A DNA stretch of 64,000 nucleotides, taken from the sequence record NC_047880.1, one strand, 5' to 3'. The position numbers were made by a program, and so were the translations under genes. A model generated the notes under the pieces. That model did not search any database, was not told where the DNA came from, and saw nothing but the letters and a program-made list of their open reading frames with translations. Below are positions 8,391 to 12,991 of this stretch, piece after piece; the stretch's first letter is position 1; each line of letters opens with the position of its first letter.

Positions 8391-10409
8391 TTACCCAAAC
8401 ACGATATTCGTGACAGCAAGATACGTCACATCATTCGAGTCGCCTCGGTCACCTGAGCCATAAGCCATAAGCCAGATTTCTTCGCCTGCTGGGATGTTTG
8501 TATCAAACGTTATGGTCTGCATTTGCGTGTTAGAATAAACACGTTGCGCAGCACCAGCTCCAGCGTATCTCTCATAGATGGACATGTCATGCCAGCTACC
8601 ATTGTTACCGTCGAATGCCCAGTTAAATGTTATGCTCACAATGCGTTTAGTGAAGAAGTTATTGAACTTGAACCAACCGTTAGACCCACCCCAGAAGTTC
8701 ATGTAACTACCGTCTTGAACTTTCAGGTTCTCAATACCGCCACTGACTGAACGTCCACCCGTTTGCGTAAACGCATAGCAATACCACGGGAATGGATCAG
8801 AGTCAGGCGGCTGGTCATTACCACCAGCGATTGTGACGCAGCGATAAGGAACAGTGAAGTCACTCACATTGATATGTGGTGGTTGAATCGGACAGTAGAC
8901 ATAGTACGACCAGTCACAACCGATTGGTGCAGTAACACGCACGTCGATATCAGAACGATAAATATGCTCTGGATATTTCCAGTATTCAAGCGTTCCTGTC
9001 TGGCCTGCTGCAACGATAGTGGAATCAAGCAGCGTCATCTGTCTGTCAAACACTTCGAACTTGGTGTCGAATGAATTCGCAACGCACACAATAAGCTCTG
9101 CGCGTATATCTGTCTGAGTGCCTAACGAGAAATTATCTTCTGTGGTTGGGTGACCGGCAGAAGACACGCTATAACTCTGACAAGGATGACGGAACTCACG
9201 AGCACCACGTTCACCTGGGCAGTACATGCTGTAGAACACGGATGACAGCGAACCTGCGTTACCGAAGTCTTTACTGACAACACGCACCATCAGATCACAC
9301 GCAACGCCTTTCGGGTCGAAGTAGAAGTACAGGAAGTTCTCACCTGTCTTCGCGTCTAACGTTGTAGCGATACGACGTCCTGACTGATACACTTCGATGA
9401 AGTCGAATGTTTCCCACGATGTGAAGTCGAGATACATCCAACCCGCTGCCCAGCCTACAAAGTGATAGTATTCAAAAGCGTTAGCATTCTGAATGCGTTC
9501 TGTGATTGGCCAGACAGAAGCATGACACGGTGCGGGGAAGATGGGCGTACCGATGTAATCAGGGTGAATAACATCAGGGAAGTTAATCACGTCATACGCG
9601 GCTTGACTATCGAGCGCTAAGCCACCACGGTCAGAAGGTGCAGAGAGACGAGGTGGGAATACCATCAAGCTCCAGCCTGTTGACTGCGTTGTACGCACAC
9701 GAATCATGAGACGCATATCAGCAGCATCAGGGTCGAACTGGAATTTGATACGCGAACGTCCAGTAAGTTTGCCACAAGATGAAGCTACGCGAACGCCCAT
9801 GTGATACACATCGACACTCATACCTGCAGGTGCATACGAAGCAAAGATAATCTCTACATAACCTTCAACAGCAGGCATTGCATAGACTGTCTCTGTAATC
9901 GTTGCACCACGTCCGTGAACAGAAGCATACGGTAAGTTAGGGTTAGCGTATGTGCCTAAGCCTGTACGAGACGCTACACCCACTGGGTCATACGTCTCAA
10001 TAGCTTTAATTCCCGGACGGTTTATTGAACGACCAGTCGGAGGTGCAGATGATGTAATGAGACCAAAGCCAGTACGACCAGCATCAGGTAAGTCGAAGCC
10101 AGCAGGATAGCCTTTCAGAATCTCATACTTCTCACGACCACCAGAGCCTATGCCGTTACCGGAGCCTTTAGTTGTTGACGTTGGTCCGCCGCCACATGCA
10201 CCGCCATCGAGATTCGAACACGGGTCATCATATGTAGGGTCAAACGAGTCATCAATATCATGCCAGCGTTTACCATACAAGTTACGCACACTGAACTTCT
10301 CAGGAGTCAGAGGAGTCCAGTCACCTTCCTTGGTGCGTATGAACATGGGCGTATCGACGCAATCAAGCCAACCGTTATTCGCTGCATTACGAATGCGAAA
10401 ACGAGACAT
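8391..10409 (-). CDS. Fibre-associated structural protein with three internal beta-sandwich-like repeats (672 aa)
   Basis: Three ~100-aa units, each preceded by P-(C/Y)-x-S and ending VFPP / MYCP / VYCP. Confidence 0.7.
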   Translation of the reverse strand: MSRFRIRNAANNGWLDCVDTPMFIRTKEGDWTPLTPEKFSVRNLYGKRWHDIDDSFDPTYDDPCSNLDGGACGGGPTSTTKGSGNGIGSGGREKYEILKGYPAGFDLPDAGRTGFGLITSSAPPTGRSINRPGIKAIETYDPVGVASRTGLGTYANPNLPYASVHGRGATITETVYAMPAVEGYVEIIFASYAPAGMSVDVYHMGVRVASSCGKLTGRSRIKFQFDPDAADMRLMIRVRTTQSTGWSLMVFPPRLSAPSDRGGLALDSQAAYDVINFPDVIHPDYIGTPIFPAPCHASVWPITERIQNANAFEYYHFVGWAAGWMYLDFTSWETFDFIEVYQSGRRIATTLDAKTGENFLYFYFDPKGVACDLMVRVVSKDFGNAGSLSSVFYSMYCPGERGAREFRHPCQSYSVSSAGHPTTEDNFSLGTQTDIRAELIVCVANSFDTKFEVFDRQMTLLDSTIVAAGQTGTLEYWKYPEHIYRSDIDVRVTAPIGCDWSYYVYCPIQPPHINVSDFTVPYRCVTIAGGNDQPPDSDPFPWYCYAFTQTGGRSVSGGIENLKVQDGSYMNFWGGSNGWFKFNNFFTKRIVSITFNWAFDGNNGSWHDMSIYERYAGAGAAQRVYSNTQMQTITFDTNIPAGEEIWLMAYGSGDRGDSNDVTYLAVTNIVFG

Positions 10410-10420
10410 GCGTTAGCTCC

Positions 10421-10912
10421 TTATGGCCTCACCCAGATTGCTCCAGGAGATACCTCTTGGTCGATAGACGGATCAGAATCTTGTACGAAGATCTCCACTA
10501 CACCCGGATTACCCGCAGCGCCAGTAGAACCGGTTGGGCCTGTAGGACCTGCTGGGCCACGCAGACCAACATAGCCTTGCTTGCCCGGTAGACCATCACC
10601 ACCACGAGGGCCGGGACAACCGTCAGTACCACGTTTACCGTTAGTACCCATCAGACCGTCGATACCATCACGACCAGCACCGCCGTCAGGACCTACAGGA
10701 CCATAGCCAATGCTGTGAATAGTAGGCAGTCCACTGATTTGCAACTTGCCGATGCTCGGAATGTTTATTGCGAGTACGCCAGTCTGCTGATCGAAAGCAC
10801 CGTTAAGCGTACTATCATCTTCGGCAGTATTTACAGACACACCGCCTTGAGTAGCTACTACAGGACCAGAAGCATTTGTCTTGAGTAGCGTTATATCAAC
10901 CTTTTCAACCAC
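10421..10912 (-). CDS. Collagen-like fibre protein (163 aa)
   Basis: Gly-X-Y run GPVGPDGGAGRDG...GPTGPTG; GTG start with RBS AAGGAG. Confidence 0.85.
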   Translation of the reverse strand: MVEKVDITLLKTNASGPVVATQGGVSVNTAEDDSTLNGAFDQQTGVLAINIPSIGKLQISGLPTIHSIGYGPVGPDGGAGRDGIDGLMGTNGKRGTDGCPGPRGGDGLPGKQGYVGLRGPAGPTGPTGSTGAAGNPGVVEIFVQDSDPSIDQEVSPGAIWVRP

Positions 10913-10921
10913 GTTAACTCC

Positions 10922-11554
10922 TTACGGCCACGTAATGCCTTGGTCTTTAGTAGGGTCGACCCAGAGAGTTCCGGCTGCCACCGCTCCAGGTTGTGTAGCA
11001 CTCACGATAATAGCGAGACGACCAGATGGTCCAGCAGGGCCTGTTGCACCAGTAGCACCAGTACCACCAGTTGCGCCGGTAGGGCCTGTACCGCCACGAG
11101 GTCCAGTAGGGCCTGTTGGTCCCATTGGGCCCGGGCCGCCTTGAGGGCCTGTAGGTCCGACGTTACCATCACGACCATCACGACCATCAGGGCCCGGCAA
11201 GCCTTGTTCACCATCTGGGCCTACAGGACCTGTACAACCTTCTGAGCCGACGTTACCATCACGACCATCACGACCATCTTTACCGTCAGCGCCTGTCTCA
11301 CCGCGTGTGCCGGGACGACCTTCTGGAATATCAGATGATGTAGGGAAGCCTGTAACTTTCACGCTCTGCCCATTAGCGAAACGCAGTGTCAGTATACCCG
11401 ACGTAGCATCATACGAAGAATCCGTTGTTACCTCAGAAGGAACATCAGACTCATCCGCACCTACAACGAGCGTACCACCGGAAGCGCGAACAGGCGTCGG
11501 CGTTGAAGTCAATCCCGTTTGAATCAGGGTTGATTTGACTTTAAGCAATGCCAT
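10922..11554 (-). CDS. Collagen-like fibre protein (210 aa)
   Basis: Gly-X-Y run of about 33 triplets containing a duplicated [11 protein letters not shown] block. Confidence 0.85.
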
Positions 11555-12991
11555 TTAAAGTTTCTCCGCTTTAGCAACGATATCCGTATTATGCACGAGT
11601 ACATCACCAACGAAATAGCAATCGAAAGGCTCAACATCAATGTCTACTGTATCGACAGCTTTGTCTACACGATAGCACTCTGATACTGAGATAGGTCCTT
11701 TGCGCCCGAGAACAGTTTGACCAAGCAGTACATCACGCGCAGGCACATAACGCCATGTCGTATCATACACAAGGACTGGATGCTCATGCGTAAATTTCTG
11801 TCCGTTAATCACATAGTAATGATCTTCACGACCATAACGTAATGCAAGCACAGACGCATAAACTGTTTTGCCTTTCATCGCAGTAACAGACCAGCCTCTG
11901 AAATCTTTAGGCTGATTAGAGTGTGCGAGAATGCTATCGCCAACAGACAGGTCTTTCACATCAACAGGACCGATGACAGTATCGACAGTTGAGCCGAATA
12001 CAATACAGCCTGTAGTAGAAGTGTTGACAGGGTTACGTGCAACAACGGTCAGCGCAGAACGAACTGTAGCTGTCGGTCGAGACGTTTGTCCCATGTCTGT
12101 AACTACGCAGGTGATAGTGCCTTTGATTGTTCTATCAGCACCGAGACCGAGACGCAGATAAAAGTTAACGACGCAGGTGGAAGTTTCAGTGTCTTGAATC
12201 GTCACGCCTTCTGTAGTAGTGATAGTCCAATTATACTTATAAGGACCGACACCACCACGAGCATTGACAGGCAGATACGCAAGAGCTGTGAATAAATCAG
12301 AGCCTTGAACAGTACGTGTACCTACCATATAGAGACTAGACACAGATGCAGCAAGCGGTGTTATGATTGGGAGAGGTGGCGCTGGCGTAACGTTAGCAGT
12401 AGGGTATAACCAAGCGAACACACGACCATCAGTAGGCTGAGTATTCGATTGCACTGCAACAGTCAGAGGCGCTGGGCCTTGAGCACCAGTAGCGCCACGC
12501 ACACAGTCGGGACCTGTATTTCCACGAGGCCCGATAGGACCTGTAGGACCGTCTGGACCAATTGGCCCCGTAGGACCGTCTGGACCAACAGGTCCTGTAT
12601 CGCCATCGGGGCCAGTATTGCCGTCTCGACCAGCATCACCTACAGTACCTGTTTGGCCTTTAGACCCAGGCTCACCTTCACAACCATCTTTACCAGTTTC
12701 ACCATCACGACCATCACGACCATCACGACCCGTGGATCCGGGAGTGCCTCTCTTGCCAGCCTTCCCTTCACCAAACATCGCAACAGTCGGCAGTCCGGCG
12801 ACATTAATCACTTCGCCATTCTGCTTGATGAATACGAGTACACCGTTCTTACTGTCAAACTTCACGCTGGCAAGTTGCGTCATTGTCAACGCATCGGACG
12901 ATTCAAAAGAGAATTGACCATCCTTGCCTACCGCACTTTTGCCTTCATCGTTGGCAGTAGTTTCGATTTGCGAGAGTTTTAACATTGTCAT
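11555..12991 (-). CDS. Collagen-like fibre protein with Ig-like domain and C-terminal Hint (intein-like) domain (478 aa)
   Basis: Gly-X-Y region, then a beta-sandwich ([10 protein letters not shown]), then G|CIVFGSTV...FTHEHP...[10 protein letters not shown]|T. Confidence 0.85.

Follow-up and report, generated by a model that had tools for sequence, protein, structure and literature searches.

Introduction

Type-A bacterial intein-like (BIL) domains, reportedly described by Amitai et al. in 2003, carry a Cys1, a block-B TxxH motif and a C-terminal His-Asn, have no endonuclease, are not mobile and occur in variable surface proteins. They are defined by the absence of a nucleophile at position +1 (PMC4031507, PMC7664689), and the alpha-amine of the tail has been proposed to resolve their thioester (PMC4031507). 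For BUBL BIL2 of Tetrahymena thermophila, which lies in a eukaryotic locus with ubiquitin-like flanks, it has been proposed that a downstream lysine acts as the nucleophile and becomes linked to the upstream C-terminus by an isopeptide bond (PMC8616854). The PT-HINT domains of bacterial polymorphic toxins precede a C-terminal toxin domain and are predicted to release it by autoproteolysis (PMC3239186). In Hedgehog, the Hog domain follows the functional part on its C-terminal side, with a Gly-Cys scissile junction; it does not depend on a C-terminal Asn and contains a sterol-recognition region.

Self-cleaving C-terminal modules are central to the maturation of phage fibres and spikes. To our knowledge, the known modules of this type are the Peptidase_S74 domains, which act as intramolecular chaperones on phage tail fibres and spikes, are located at the C-terminus, cleave themselves off and are absent from the mature trimeric fibre.

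We analysed a 64-kb stretch of DNA, hereafter the window, which matches the jumbo phage Erwinia phage vB_EamM_Y3 with 100% identity (KY984068.1; a window position equals the KY984068.1 position minus 62000). The presence of an intein or Hint domain was already flagged in GenBank, where the note on Y3_110 reads 'putative phage tail protein, contains intein domain', and for this window alone our result is more modest. The collagen-like fibre encoded by Y3_110 is capped by a fixed, non-mobile, type-A-BIL-like Hint domain that most likely, although far from certainly, removes itself after translation or assembly.

Gene organization and domain architecture of Y3_110

The features of Y3_110 and its neighbours are listed in Table 1. 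The stop codon of Y3_111 overlaps the start of Y3_110, and the ATG of Y3_109 comes immediately after the TAA stop of Y3_110. Y3_111 shows a weak N-terminal match to a tail-collar fibre domain (Pfam Phage_tail_fib, E 1e-4, just under the cut-off). Y3_110 matches PHROG 38766 over its whole length (E 4.6e-302), and its N-terminal domain matches PHROG 8745, 'tail fiber protein'.

Table 1. Coordinates of the domains of Y3_110 and of the neighbouring genes in the window
Feature	Residues or length	Window position	Strand	Description	Basis
Y3_111	776 aa	12988..15318	(-)	upstream gene of the module	ORF, GenBank
Y3_110	478 aa + stop	11555..12991	(-)	collagen-like virion fibre with C-terminal Hint cap	ORF, GenBank CDS
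N-terminal domain	1-75	12767..12991	(-)	common to Y3_109 and Y3_108; presumed attachment domain	
Collagen triple-helix segment	76-175	12467..12766	(-)		Pfam PF01391, E 1e-14
Post-collagen segment and Pro-rich linker	176-212	12356..12466	(-)	equivalent segment is the end of Y3_109 and Y3_108	
Beta-rich middle domain	213-320	12032..12355	(-)		predicted strands, weak profile matches
Variable linker	321-328	12008..12031	(-)	ends in Gly328, Hint position -1	
Hint domain	329-468	11588..12007	(-)		profile, AlphaFold2, Foldseek
Tail	469-478	11558..11587	(-)	[10 protein letters not shown]; ten residues, then stop	
Y3_109	210 aa	10922..11554	(-)	collagen-like paralog without middle domain and Hint	ORF, Pfam, BLASTP
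Y3_108	163 aa	10421..10912	(-)	second collagen-like paralog	ORF, Pfam, BLASTP

Local BLASTP indicated that the pre-collagen part of Y3_110 is similar to those of Y3_109 and Y3_108 over 25-31 residues (E 1e-5 and 3e-4, respectively), and that the latter two resemble each other over 72 residues (E 6e-6). Residues 45-198 of Y3_110 share 46% identity with residues 48-202 of Y3_109 (BLASTP, E 1e-42). The collagen segment contains 29 unbroken G-X-Y triplets from residue 76, followed by a short interruption, and has one Cys, at residue 104. Further downstream, W194, L195, P197 and T198 are invariant in the orthologs, and both paralogs stop at the equivalent of about residue 205. The Hint domain was also considered as a nucleator of the collagen helix and rejected in this role: Y3_109 and Y3_108 have collagen segments without a Hint domain, so trimerisation of the collagen as such does not depend on it.

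The first-pass annotation of this DNA had placed an Ig domain between the collagen and the Hint domain. The region is beta-rich, with strands at residues 251-319 in the full-length AlphaFold2 model obtained with the 20-ortholog alignment, which is a poor model of low confidence (pLDDT 45), and on this modelling an Ig-like fold of residues 213-320 is plausible. The Ig assignment was not confirmed at the sequence level, where support is weak and consists of matches to SprB repeats in 9 of 20 orthologs (best E 0.0036) and to the phage decoration protein 5lxk (E 0.14). With the full-length model Foldseek recovered the Hint fold and no match for the middle domain, and the NCBIfam search returned collagen-adhesin matches only, all sub-threshold. 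In the linker that follows, residues 322-327 are variable and Gly328 is invariant among the 20 orthologs.

Identification of the Hint domain

A complete Hint domain of about 140 residues at the C-terminus of a collagen fibre had been proposed from the sequence, and the open reading frame, the Pfam collagen match, the profile match to 2lwy and the structural model all agree with it. The key residues are Cys329 (12005-12007, exactly the codon first assigned to Cys1), Thr401 and His404 (11780-11791), Asp450-Ile-Asp-Val and His467-Asn468 (11588-11593). They belong to the motifs G/C-I-V-F-G-S-T-V (328-336), F-T-H-E-H-P (400-405), [13 protein letters not shown] (449-461) and V-L-V-H-N/T (464-469), where the slash marks a domain boundary; all the motifs quoted in the first-pass annotation are present. 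The annotation was also right that no homing endonuclease is present, as the Hint domain, with only 140 residues, leaves no room for one.

The single sequence matched PDB 2lwy, the structure of a type-A BIL domain from Clostridium thermocellum, over its full length (E 1e-4), and a profile built from the relatives matched 2lwy at E 8.8e-25 together with 32 other Hint chains. Structure prediction, which had been suggested as a check, gave an AlphaFold2 model of residues 328-478 with a mean pLDDT of 94.9 and a pTM of 0.89, in which the tail is disordered (pLDDT 64 and 44 in the last two blocks). Foldseek retrieved 47 PDB matches with this model at E<=1e-3, every one of them a Hint fold (47/47), with 2lwy first (TM 0.73/0.80), followed by BUBL BIL2 (6y75), Hedgehog (1at0) and inteins. 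Residues 329-468 are a genuine Hint-fold domain, with a match far beyond chance, and this is the sole Hint within the window. The Pfam scores of Y3_110 are below the gathering thresholds both for PT-HINT (18.1 bits, threshold 27.7) and for Hint_2 (16.7 bits, threshold 28.4). PT-HINT (PF07591) is the nearest Pfam model, matching 15 of 20 orthologs at E<=0.1 and 34 of the 56 distant relatives described below at E<=1e-3 (best 1.9e-28).

Conservation and selection among orthologs

In 20 orthologs at 55-80% identity, G328, C329, T401, H404, D450, H467 and N468 are invariant, as are Asp470, Ala475, Glu476 and Lys477 of the tail. The Hint part has a dN/dS of 0.118, the other domains of Y3_110 having values of 0.13-0.16, and is under purifying selection. 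Both catalytic sets to which the first-pass annotation had drawn attention, Cys329, Thr401 and His404 for the N-S acyl shift and His467-Asn468 for cyclisation of the Asn, are thus fully conserved, and because of this invariance autoprocessing can reasonably be inferred. On the same sequence basis some cleavage is predicted to occur, and the dominant product is likewise a prediction.

All 21 database orthologs have the Hint domain, as do about 50 records of cultured phages from the jumbo-phage clade; none of these orthologs lacks it. A scan of cellular genomes with the ortholog alignment returned one contig only, a Y3-like phage contig binned in a Raoultibacter MAG. The Y3_110 Hint does not qualify as a mobile intein, given the missing endonuclease, its fixation in the clade, its C-terminal location and the lack of any Hint-less ortholog that we could find.

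The residue at +1 is Thr in Y3, Ala in P0021 and P0023, Ser in P0022, Met in P0024, Val in Yersinia phage fHe-Yen9-02 and Met in Alcaligenes phage Afa-NA1, and two near-identical proteins of the Yersinia-phage type differ at this position (Ala vs Val). These data bear on class-1 splicing, in which Thr469 would attack the thioester and Asn468 would cyclise, so that the mature fibre would consist of residues 1-328 joined to the 10-residue tail by a normal peptide bond, as the first-pass annotation had suggested for one possible outcome. The Y3 protein does have every class-1 element, including the +1 Thr, and the good conservation of the tail in the clade is what would be expected if it were kept in the mature protein. 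However, orthologs that otherwise keep the tail have Ala, Val, Ser or Met at +1, and given the variability of this residue (Thr, Ser, Ala, Val, Met) class-1 splicing via Thr+1 is not the conserved function. In addition, the closest structures are BIL domains rather than inteins, and there is neither an insertion into a conserved site of a host protein nor a Hint-less counterpart among the orthologs. Together with the +1 counts from more distant proteins given in the next section, these observations make class-1 splicing of the tip quite improbable.

Distant relatives and the residues flanking the Hint domain

The relatives analysed were the best 150 matches among 1.84 billion representatives; 104 further matches at E<=1e-3 are outside the counts. 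Among the best 150, 140 align through the His-Asn, which is invariant in all 140, and 96 of these 140 have tails of 1-15 residues; a tail of length 0 was found in none (0/140). In 56 distant short-tail relatives, whose alignment has a mean column identity of 8%, Cys1, the block-B Thr and the His-Asn are invariant and the block-B His is present in at least 90%. The +1 residue of the 96 short-tailed relatives (of the best 150) is Ser in 9, Thr in 2, Cys in none and a non-nucleophile in 85, a distribution that argues against class-1 splicing as a shared function.

By contrast with the variable +1 position, a lysine is present in 93 of the 96 short tails (of the best 150), 24.6 +/- 4.1 being expected. 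The tail ends at the Lys itself or one residue past it in 51 of the 93, and Arg is not enriched. An ordinary composition bias of C-termini and a search artefact were ruled out as the source of this enrichment by composition controls and by a tail-less query, with which the rule was unchanged. As far as the sequences tell, lysine is the single conserved feature of the tail across the relatives, one that the first-pass annotation had not noted. On the other side of the domain, per-position counts showed a Gly at -1, before Cys1, in 41 of the 56 distant relatives. The Lys rule of the tail and the Gly rule at -1 are new here, and no description of a downstream-Lys feature of this Hint subfamily was found in the searchable literature.

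These patterns are relevant to the possibility that the Hint domain is retained as a distal knob, a binding or stabilising domain without catalysis, and that no processing takes place. Hint relatives do include inactive Hint-like folds, which counts in favour of such a knob, but it would not explain, all together, why Cys1, the block-B Thr and the His-Asn never vary across very divergent proteins, why at least one residue is needed after the Asn, and the Lys rule; we consider it decidedly improbable.

Most of the nearest relatives (best 150) are C-terminal Hint caps. Upstream of the Hint domain, these proteins have collagen, fn3, Ig, PKD, Calx-beta and tail-collar fibre domains. Where the context of a relative is known (the Y3-type module, three cultured phages and five metagenomic contigs), the gene is a phage tail or fibre gene, and on 5 of the 5 contigs with enough sequence for a judgement the Hint gene lies in a tail or fibre module of a phage. 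On one metagenomic contig the neighbouring fibre carries a Peptidase_S74 domain. An architecture with a Hint, intein or BIL domain on a phage fibre was not described in the literature searched. From their sequences, the phage fibre proteins with a C-terminal Hint cap apparently form an undescribed class of 96 sequence clusters, and proteins of this class probably cut off their own cap after assembly.

Comparison with described Hint domains

Sequence features place the Y3_110 Hint closer to the type-A BIL domains than to inteins. Y3_110 shares with them the Cys1, the block-B TxxH, the C-terminal His-Asn, the lack of an endonuclease and of mobility, and the location in a variable surface protein, and 2lwy is the best match by both sequence and structure. 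The +1 nucleophile, absent by definition from type A, is also dispensable in the family of Y3_110, where 85 of 96 short tails (of the best 150) and several orthologs lack it, Y3 itself having Thr469. Besides this Thr, Y3_110 differs from type A in that its Hint domain caps a phage virion fibre at the C-terminus, with only 10 residues after it, and in that a downstream Lys is near universal in its subfamily. With respect to canonical class-1 inteins, we found no conserved Cys, Ser or Thr at +1, no conserved insertion site and no signs of mobility.

The comparison with PT-HINT fails at the downstream side, where a toxin should directly follow: 96 of 140 relatives (of the best 150) have tails of at most 15 residues. 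As only a 10-residue tail comes after the Y3_110 Hint, the part released would be the Hint domain itself, whereas PT-HINT releases a toxin. The likeness to Peptidase_S74 lies in the same position and a presumed common logic, while fold and chemistry are unrelated and the Pfam search found no Peptidase_S74 match in Y3_110; it is proposed as a functional analogy only.

BUBL BIL2 (6y75, 6tmm) is the second-best structural match (TM 0.72) and has a Gly-ending upstream segment and a parallel to the tail Lys. It differs in its sequence, only 16-17% identical, and in its locus, the flanks of Y3_110 not being ubiquitin-like. Isopeptide chemistry in Y3_110 would be pure inference. The Hog domain (1at0) is similar in fold (TM 0.72/0.74), in the Gly-Cys junction and in its position, but Y3_110 has an invariant His-Asn and, in place of an adduct-recognition region after the Hint core, a tail of 10 residues.

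These two systems suggest a conjugation in trans, an outcome also named in the first-pass annotation, in which the Gly328 thioester would be attacked from outside, for instance by a small molecule or by a Lys in a second virion protein, and the fibre would become covalently linked to the attacking molecule by its C-terminus. The Gly-Cys junction with its invariant Gly328 is that of Hedgehog, both folds match with a TM of 0.72, and BUBL BIL2 attaches the domain upstream of it to lysines on a number of substrates (PMC8616854). An external acceptor nevertheless appears unlikely: nothing like a sterol-recognition region is found in the 10 residues after the Hint, and the His-Asn and downstream Lys are near universal with a tail that is never absent (best 150), which argues for an acceptor in the same chain.

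Proposed self-removal of the cap

According to the reading that we favour, self-removal, Cys329 would convert the Gly328-Cys329 peptide bond into a thioester with the aid of Thr401 and His404, and Asn468, aided by His467, would cyclise and cut the bond to the 10-residue tail. Resolution of the thioester would then fall either to water, which would simply cleave it, or to an amine in the tail. Two such amines are candidates: the alpha-amine, in line with the proposal for type-A BIL domains, and the epsilon-amine of the conserved Lys477, in line with what is reported on BUBL BIL2. This would yield a free Hint domain of 140 residues and a mature fibre, residues 1-328, with a C-terminal Gly to which the short tail peptide may or may not be attached. 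The benefit of the cap to the phage is conjecture: it may serve as a removable C-terminal maturation module, comparable by its position to the self-cleaving Peptidase_S74 chaperone domains. Release of the Hint domain in the manner of an intramolecular chaperone was another outcome considered in the first-pass annotation. As a counterpoint, a tail that is simply thrown away would not be expected to keep Asp470, Ala475, Glu476 and Lys477 so strictly within the clade.

A further and more tentative proposal, possible although on balance doubtful, is that the Hint fibre caps are a distinct functional class in which the tail Lys replaces the missing +1 nucleophile, with products that are joined by an isopeptide bond or have the fibre tip fixed to another amine. 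The still tethered Lys would direct its epsilon-amine at the Gly-Cys thioester, after which cyclisation of the Asn would release the Hint domain and leave the C-terminal Gly of the fibre isopeptide-bonded to a very short peptide in a 'lysine-directed' splice; in a variant, the same chemistry would fix the tip covalently to another amine. Such a mechanism would explain why the tail is never absent (best 150), why it ends at or near a Lys (51/93) with no enrichment of Arg, and why the His-Asn is invariant while the +1 residue is free to vary.

Significance

If the processing is true, the Hint-based cap would represent a second, unrelated maturation route for receptor-binding proteins, and such fibre genes would be annotated differently, with a mature protein that lacks about 150 residues of the open reading frame. 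The downstream Lys and the upstream Gly are simple, testable rules that suggest an amine-directed variant of protein splicing, so far reported for one ciliate locus only, and such a variant, if true, would be of interest for research on the intein mechanism and for protein-ligation technology.

Genomic context and domain organization of Y3_110

The window corresponds at 100% identity to the Erwinia amylovora jumbo phage vB_EamM_Y3 (KY984068.1, genus Sasquatchvirus), and subtracting 62000 from a position in that record gives the window position. Y3_110 is located in the baseplate and fibre module. Genes for a baseplate spike, a wedge and a 1508-aa protein lie upstream, as does the 776-aa Y3_111, which matches a tail-collar fibre weakly; downstream come the shorter collagen-like genes Y3_109 and Y3_108, Y3_107, a gene for an ILEI-domain protein and a further fibre gene. 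The overlapping and abutting codons at its two junctions suggest translational coupling, and Y3_111, Y3_110 and Y3_109 are presumably co-translated. GenBank already lists Y3_110 as a 'putative tail protein' and notes that it 'contains intein domain'; the observation of an intein domain is therefore not new by itself.

Position of features in and around Y3_110
Feature	Position	Remarks
Y3_110 gene	window 11555-12991, minus strand	478 aa
Junction Y3_111/Y3_110	window 12988-12991	ATGA; Y3_111 stop overlaps Y3_110 start
Junction Y3_110/Y3_109	window 11552-11557	TAAATG; Y3_110 TAA abuts Y3_109 ATG
Cys1 codon	window 12005-12007	
G-X-Y runs of adjacent paralogs	window 10421-12991, minus strand	29 (Y3_110), 34 (Y3_109) and 23 (Y3_108) triplets
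N-terminal domain	residues 1-75	common to Y3_110 and both paralogs
Collagen	residues 76-175	Pfam E 1e-14; 29 uninterrupted G-X-Y triplets
Conserved post-collagen segment and Pro-rich linker	residues 176-212	
Beta-rich middle domain	residues 213-320	
Variable linker	residues 321-328	last residue is the invariant Gly328
Hint domain	residues 329-468	
Tail	residues 469-478	

Residues 45-198 of Y3_110 align with Y3_109 at 46% identity (E 1e-42); Y3_110 is thus a fibre of the Y3_109 type, extended at its C-terminus by the middle and Hint domains. The Ig domain proposed by the first-pass annotation to precede the Hint domain is plausible for the middle domain, to which all the matches are weak. Each of the three collagen paralogs contains exactly one Cys, always at offset +28 counted from the Gly that opens the run, and this shared register could conceivably serve a disulfide knot, or mixed trimers.

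Structure and family of the Hint domain

The motifs quoted in the first-pass annotation are all present where they had been placed, and its reading of a complete Hint domain at the C-terminus of a collagen fibre was confirmed by sequence and profile searches of the PDB, AlphaFold2 and Foldseek; the domain indeed has no homing endonuclease. With a single sequence, the PDB search matched 2lwy, a bacterial intein-like (BIL) domain of C. thermocellum, over its full length (E 1e-4), and a profile of 62 relatives raised this match to E 8.8e-25 and added 32 other Hint chains. Structure prediction returned the Hint fold: the AlphaFold2 model built with the 62-relative alignment reached a pLDDT of 94.9 and a pTM of 0.89, the 10-residue tail being its only disordered part. 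The top Foldseek match in the PDB was again 2lwy (TM 0.73/0.80), followed by BIL2 of the Tetrahymena BUBL locus as second-best match, the Hedgehog autoprocessing domain and many inteins. Among viral models the best matches were Hint domains at the C-termini of proteins from phage NCTB and from uncultured phages, the latter proteins carrying fn3 or PASTA domains. The Pfam families PT-HINT and Hint_2 matched Y3_110 below threshold only; at E<=0.1 they matched 15 and 19 of 20 orthologs, respectively, and PT-HINT reached E<=1e-3 in 34 of 56 distant relatives.

Conservation of the Hint domain and variation at +1

The Hint domain is carried by 21/21 database orthologs of Y3_110 and by about 50 records of cultured Erwinia, Dickeya and Yersinia jumbo phages belonging to the same clade, and no second Hint domain was found elsewhere in the 64,000-nt window. 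Residues G328, C329, T401, H402, E403, H404, P405, D450, I451, D452, V453, H467 and N468 are invariant in 20 orthologs of 55-80% identity. Pairwise dN/dS is 0.118 in the Hint domain, as low as in the other parts of the gene (0.144 for the N-terminal part, 0.164 for collagen, 0.129 for the middle domain). A selfish, mobile intein was ruled out by the absence of an endonuclease, the presence of the domain in all 21 database orthologs and the low dN/dS; the domain is a resident functional one.

Thr469, the first residue after the terminal Asn (+1), is not conserved: the orthologs and relatives have Ala (P0021, P0023), Val (Yersinia phage fHe-Yen9-02, otherwise nearly identical to P0021), Ser (P0022) or Met (P0024 and Alcaligenes phage Afa-NA1). 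Since this residue varies, the splicing through Thr+1 considered in the first-pass annotation is unlikely as a conserved function, whereas the invariant catalytic residues make the proposed autoprocessing of the fibre likely. Type-A BIL domains have His-Asn without a +1 nucleophile and mainly cleave both junctions, and the freed amine can ligate the flanks (PMC4031507, PMC7664689); by these definitions, the variable +1 resembles type-A behaviour.

C-terminal Hint domains in a wider set of proteins

Searching 1.84 billion representatives exhaustively with phmmer, with the 151-residue C-terminal piece of Y3_110 as query, revealed 254 proteins at E<=1e-3. Among the best 150 of these, 140 align through His-Asn. 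At least one residue follows His-Asn in all 140, and in 96 of them the tail is short, at 1-15 residues (median 7). In the 56 short-tail relatives of at least 300 aa from this set, Cys1, the block-B Thr and His-Asn never vary, and the upstream parts include collagen (13), fn3, Ig, PKD, Calx-beta and a tail-collar fibre domain. All five genomic contexts on sufficiently long contigs are phage structural modules, one of which, on the 311-kb contig L017, repeats the Y3 gene order. The sole match in cellular genomes is JAVWLC010000001.1 (34.7 kb, 'MAG: Raoultibacter sp.', an actinobacterial MAG), which encodes a Y3_110 ortholog at 77% identity and is almost certainly a mis-binned contig of a Y3-like phage. 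Phage NCTB has been assigned to the jumbo-phage group of Y3 (PMC7412058), and at least three of its proteins (506, 1304 and 153 aa) have predicted structures that match the Y3_110 Hint domain best; the 1304-aa protein (LT598654.1 locus, L003:434-4348) combines a Calx-beta domain with the same kind of terminal Hint domain and a 7-residue tail with Lys. We found no description of this class of phage-fibre Hint caps in the searchable literature.

Other arrangements were also observed. In another of the five contexts, a metagenomic myophage contig (L015:6541-9089), the gene directly after a tail fibre encodes a protein of 362 aa that ends in a Hint cap. The fibre itself contains Phage_fiber_2 and weakly matches the self-cleaving Peptidase_S74 domain; two different putative self-cleaving modules adjoin here. 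Two or more Hint domains occur in 25 relatives, in many of which they are separated by just Lys and 0-4 Gly; such tandem arrays of two to three are found in P0034, P0045, P0064, P0075, P0094, P0115, P0154 and P0167 and at locus L019:7001-8806. P0034 is encoded on a phage-like contig but in a non-structural region, where it adjoins RNA-repair and queuosine-type genes, then LemA and ion-channel genes.

The 78-kb phage Afa-NA1 (PV550095.1 43930-52358, locus L002) has the whole fibre module of window 8391-12991 in the same order, with homologs of Y3_109 (53% identity), Y3_108 (50%), Y3_107 (53%) and the Hint fibre (37%), which suggests that a jumbo and a non-jumbo phage have exchanged the module. 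Its 'putative large intein domain protein' (L002:5619-6845, plus strand) is the homolog of Y3_107 (window 8391-10409, minus strand; 53% over 395 aa). The family profile detected no Hint domain in it and Y3_107 has no Pfam match of any kind; the name looks like a propagated mis-annotation.

Lys and Gly flanking the Hint domain

At least one Lys is present in 93 of the 96 short tails from the best 150 relatives, against 23.2 +/- 3.8 expected from random same-length segments of the same proteins and 24.6 +/- 4.1 (maximum 41 in 2000 draws) from length-matched C-termini of 147 ordinary phage ORFs. Among short-tail residues 15.6% are Lys, versus 3.8% elsewhere in these proteins, and Arg, present in 9/96 tails, is not enriched. 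One-residue tails are plain Lys in 4/5 cases, and Lys is last or penultimate in 51 of the 93 Lys-bearing tails. Longer regions follow the domain in 44 relatives, of which 36 have Lys within 7 residues after His-Asn but only 7 have it in their own last 7 residues; the Lys rule is therefore a property of the Hint junction rather than of the protein end. A query ending at Asn468 retained 139/140 matches, with Lys within the following 10 residues in 131/139, and left the rule unchanged. Within the Y3 clade Lys477 (+9) is invariant and Lys474 variable, and Lys at +9 is kept in P0023, P0024 and Afa-NA1 despite Ala or Met at +1. On the other side of the domain, the residue before Cys1 is Gly in 41 of the 56 short-tail relatives of at least 300 aa, and Gly is the commonest residue at -2 to -6.

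Mechanism and biological role

In Hint chemistry, Cys1 with the block-B Thr and His forms a thioester at the upstream junction, and the terminal Asn, assisted by the His before it, undergoes cyclisation that breaks the downstream junction (PMC4031507). We infer that both reactions occur in Y3_110 and that its Hint domain would excise itself, because both sets of catalytic residues are invariant and at least one residue always follows the Asn. The thioester might be resolved by water (plain cleavage), by the alpha-amine that is freed on the tail, a route proposed for type-A BILs, or, in Y3 alone, by the Thr469 side chain. The Lys rule suggests the epsilon-amine of a tail Lys as a further candidate, with one precedent: for BUBL BIL2, an isopeptide bond was reported between the upstream C-terminus and a lysine, the 'nucleophilic lysine' of the downstream domain being placed at the N-terminal junction (PMC8616854).

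The Y3_110 Hint domain is closest to, and predicted to work like, a type-A BIL or PT-HINT domain, but unlike either it caps the end of a phage virion fibre and is followed by a short Lys-bearing tail. A requirement for collagen trimerisation as such was rejected because Y3_109 and Y3_108 have collagen without Hint. By analogy with the Peptidase_S74 chaperone domains of other fibres, the Hint domain of Y3_110 is probably a removable maturation cap.
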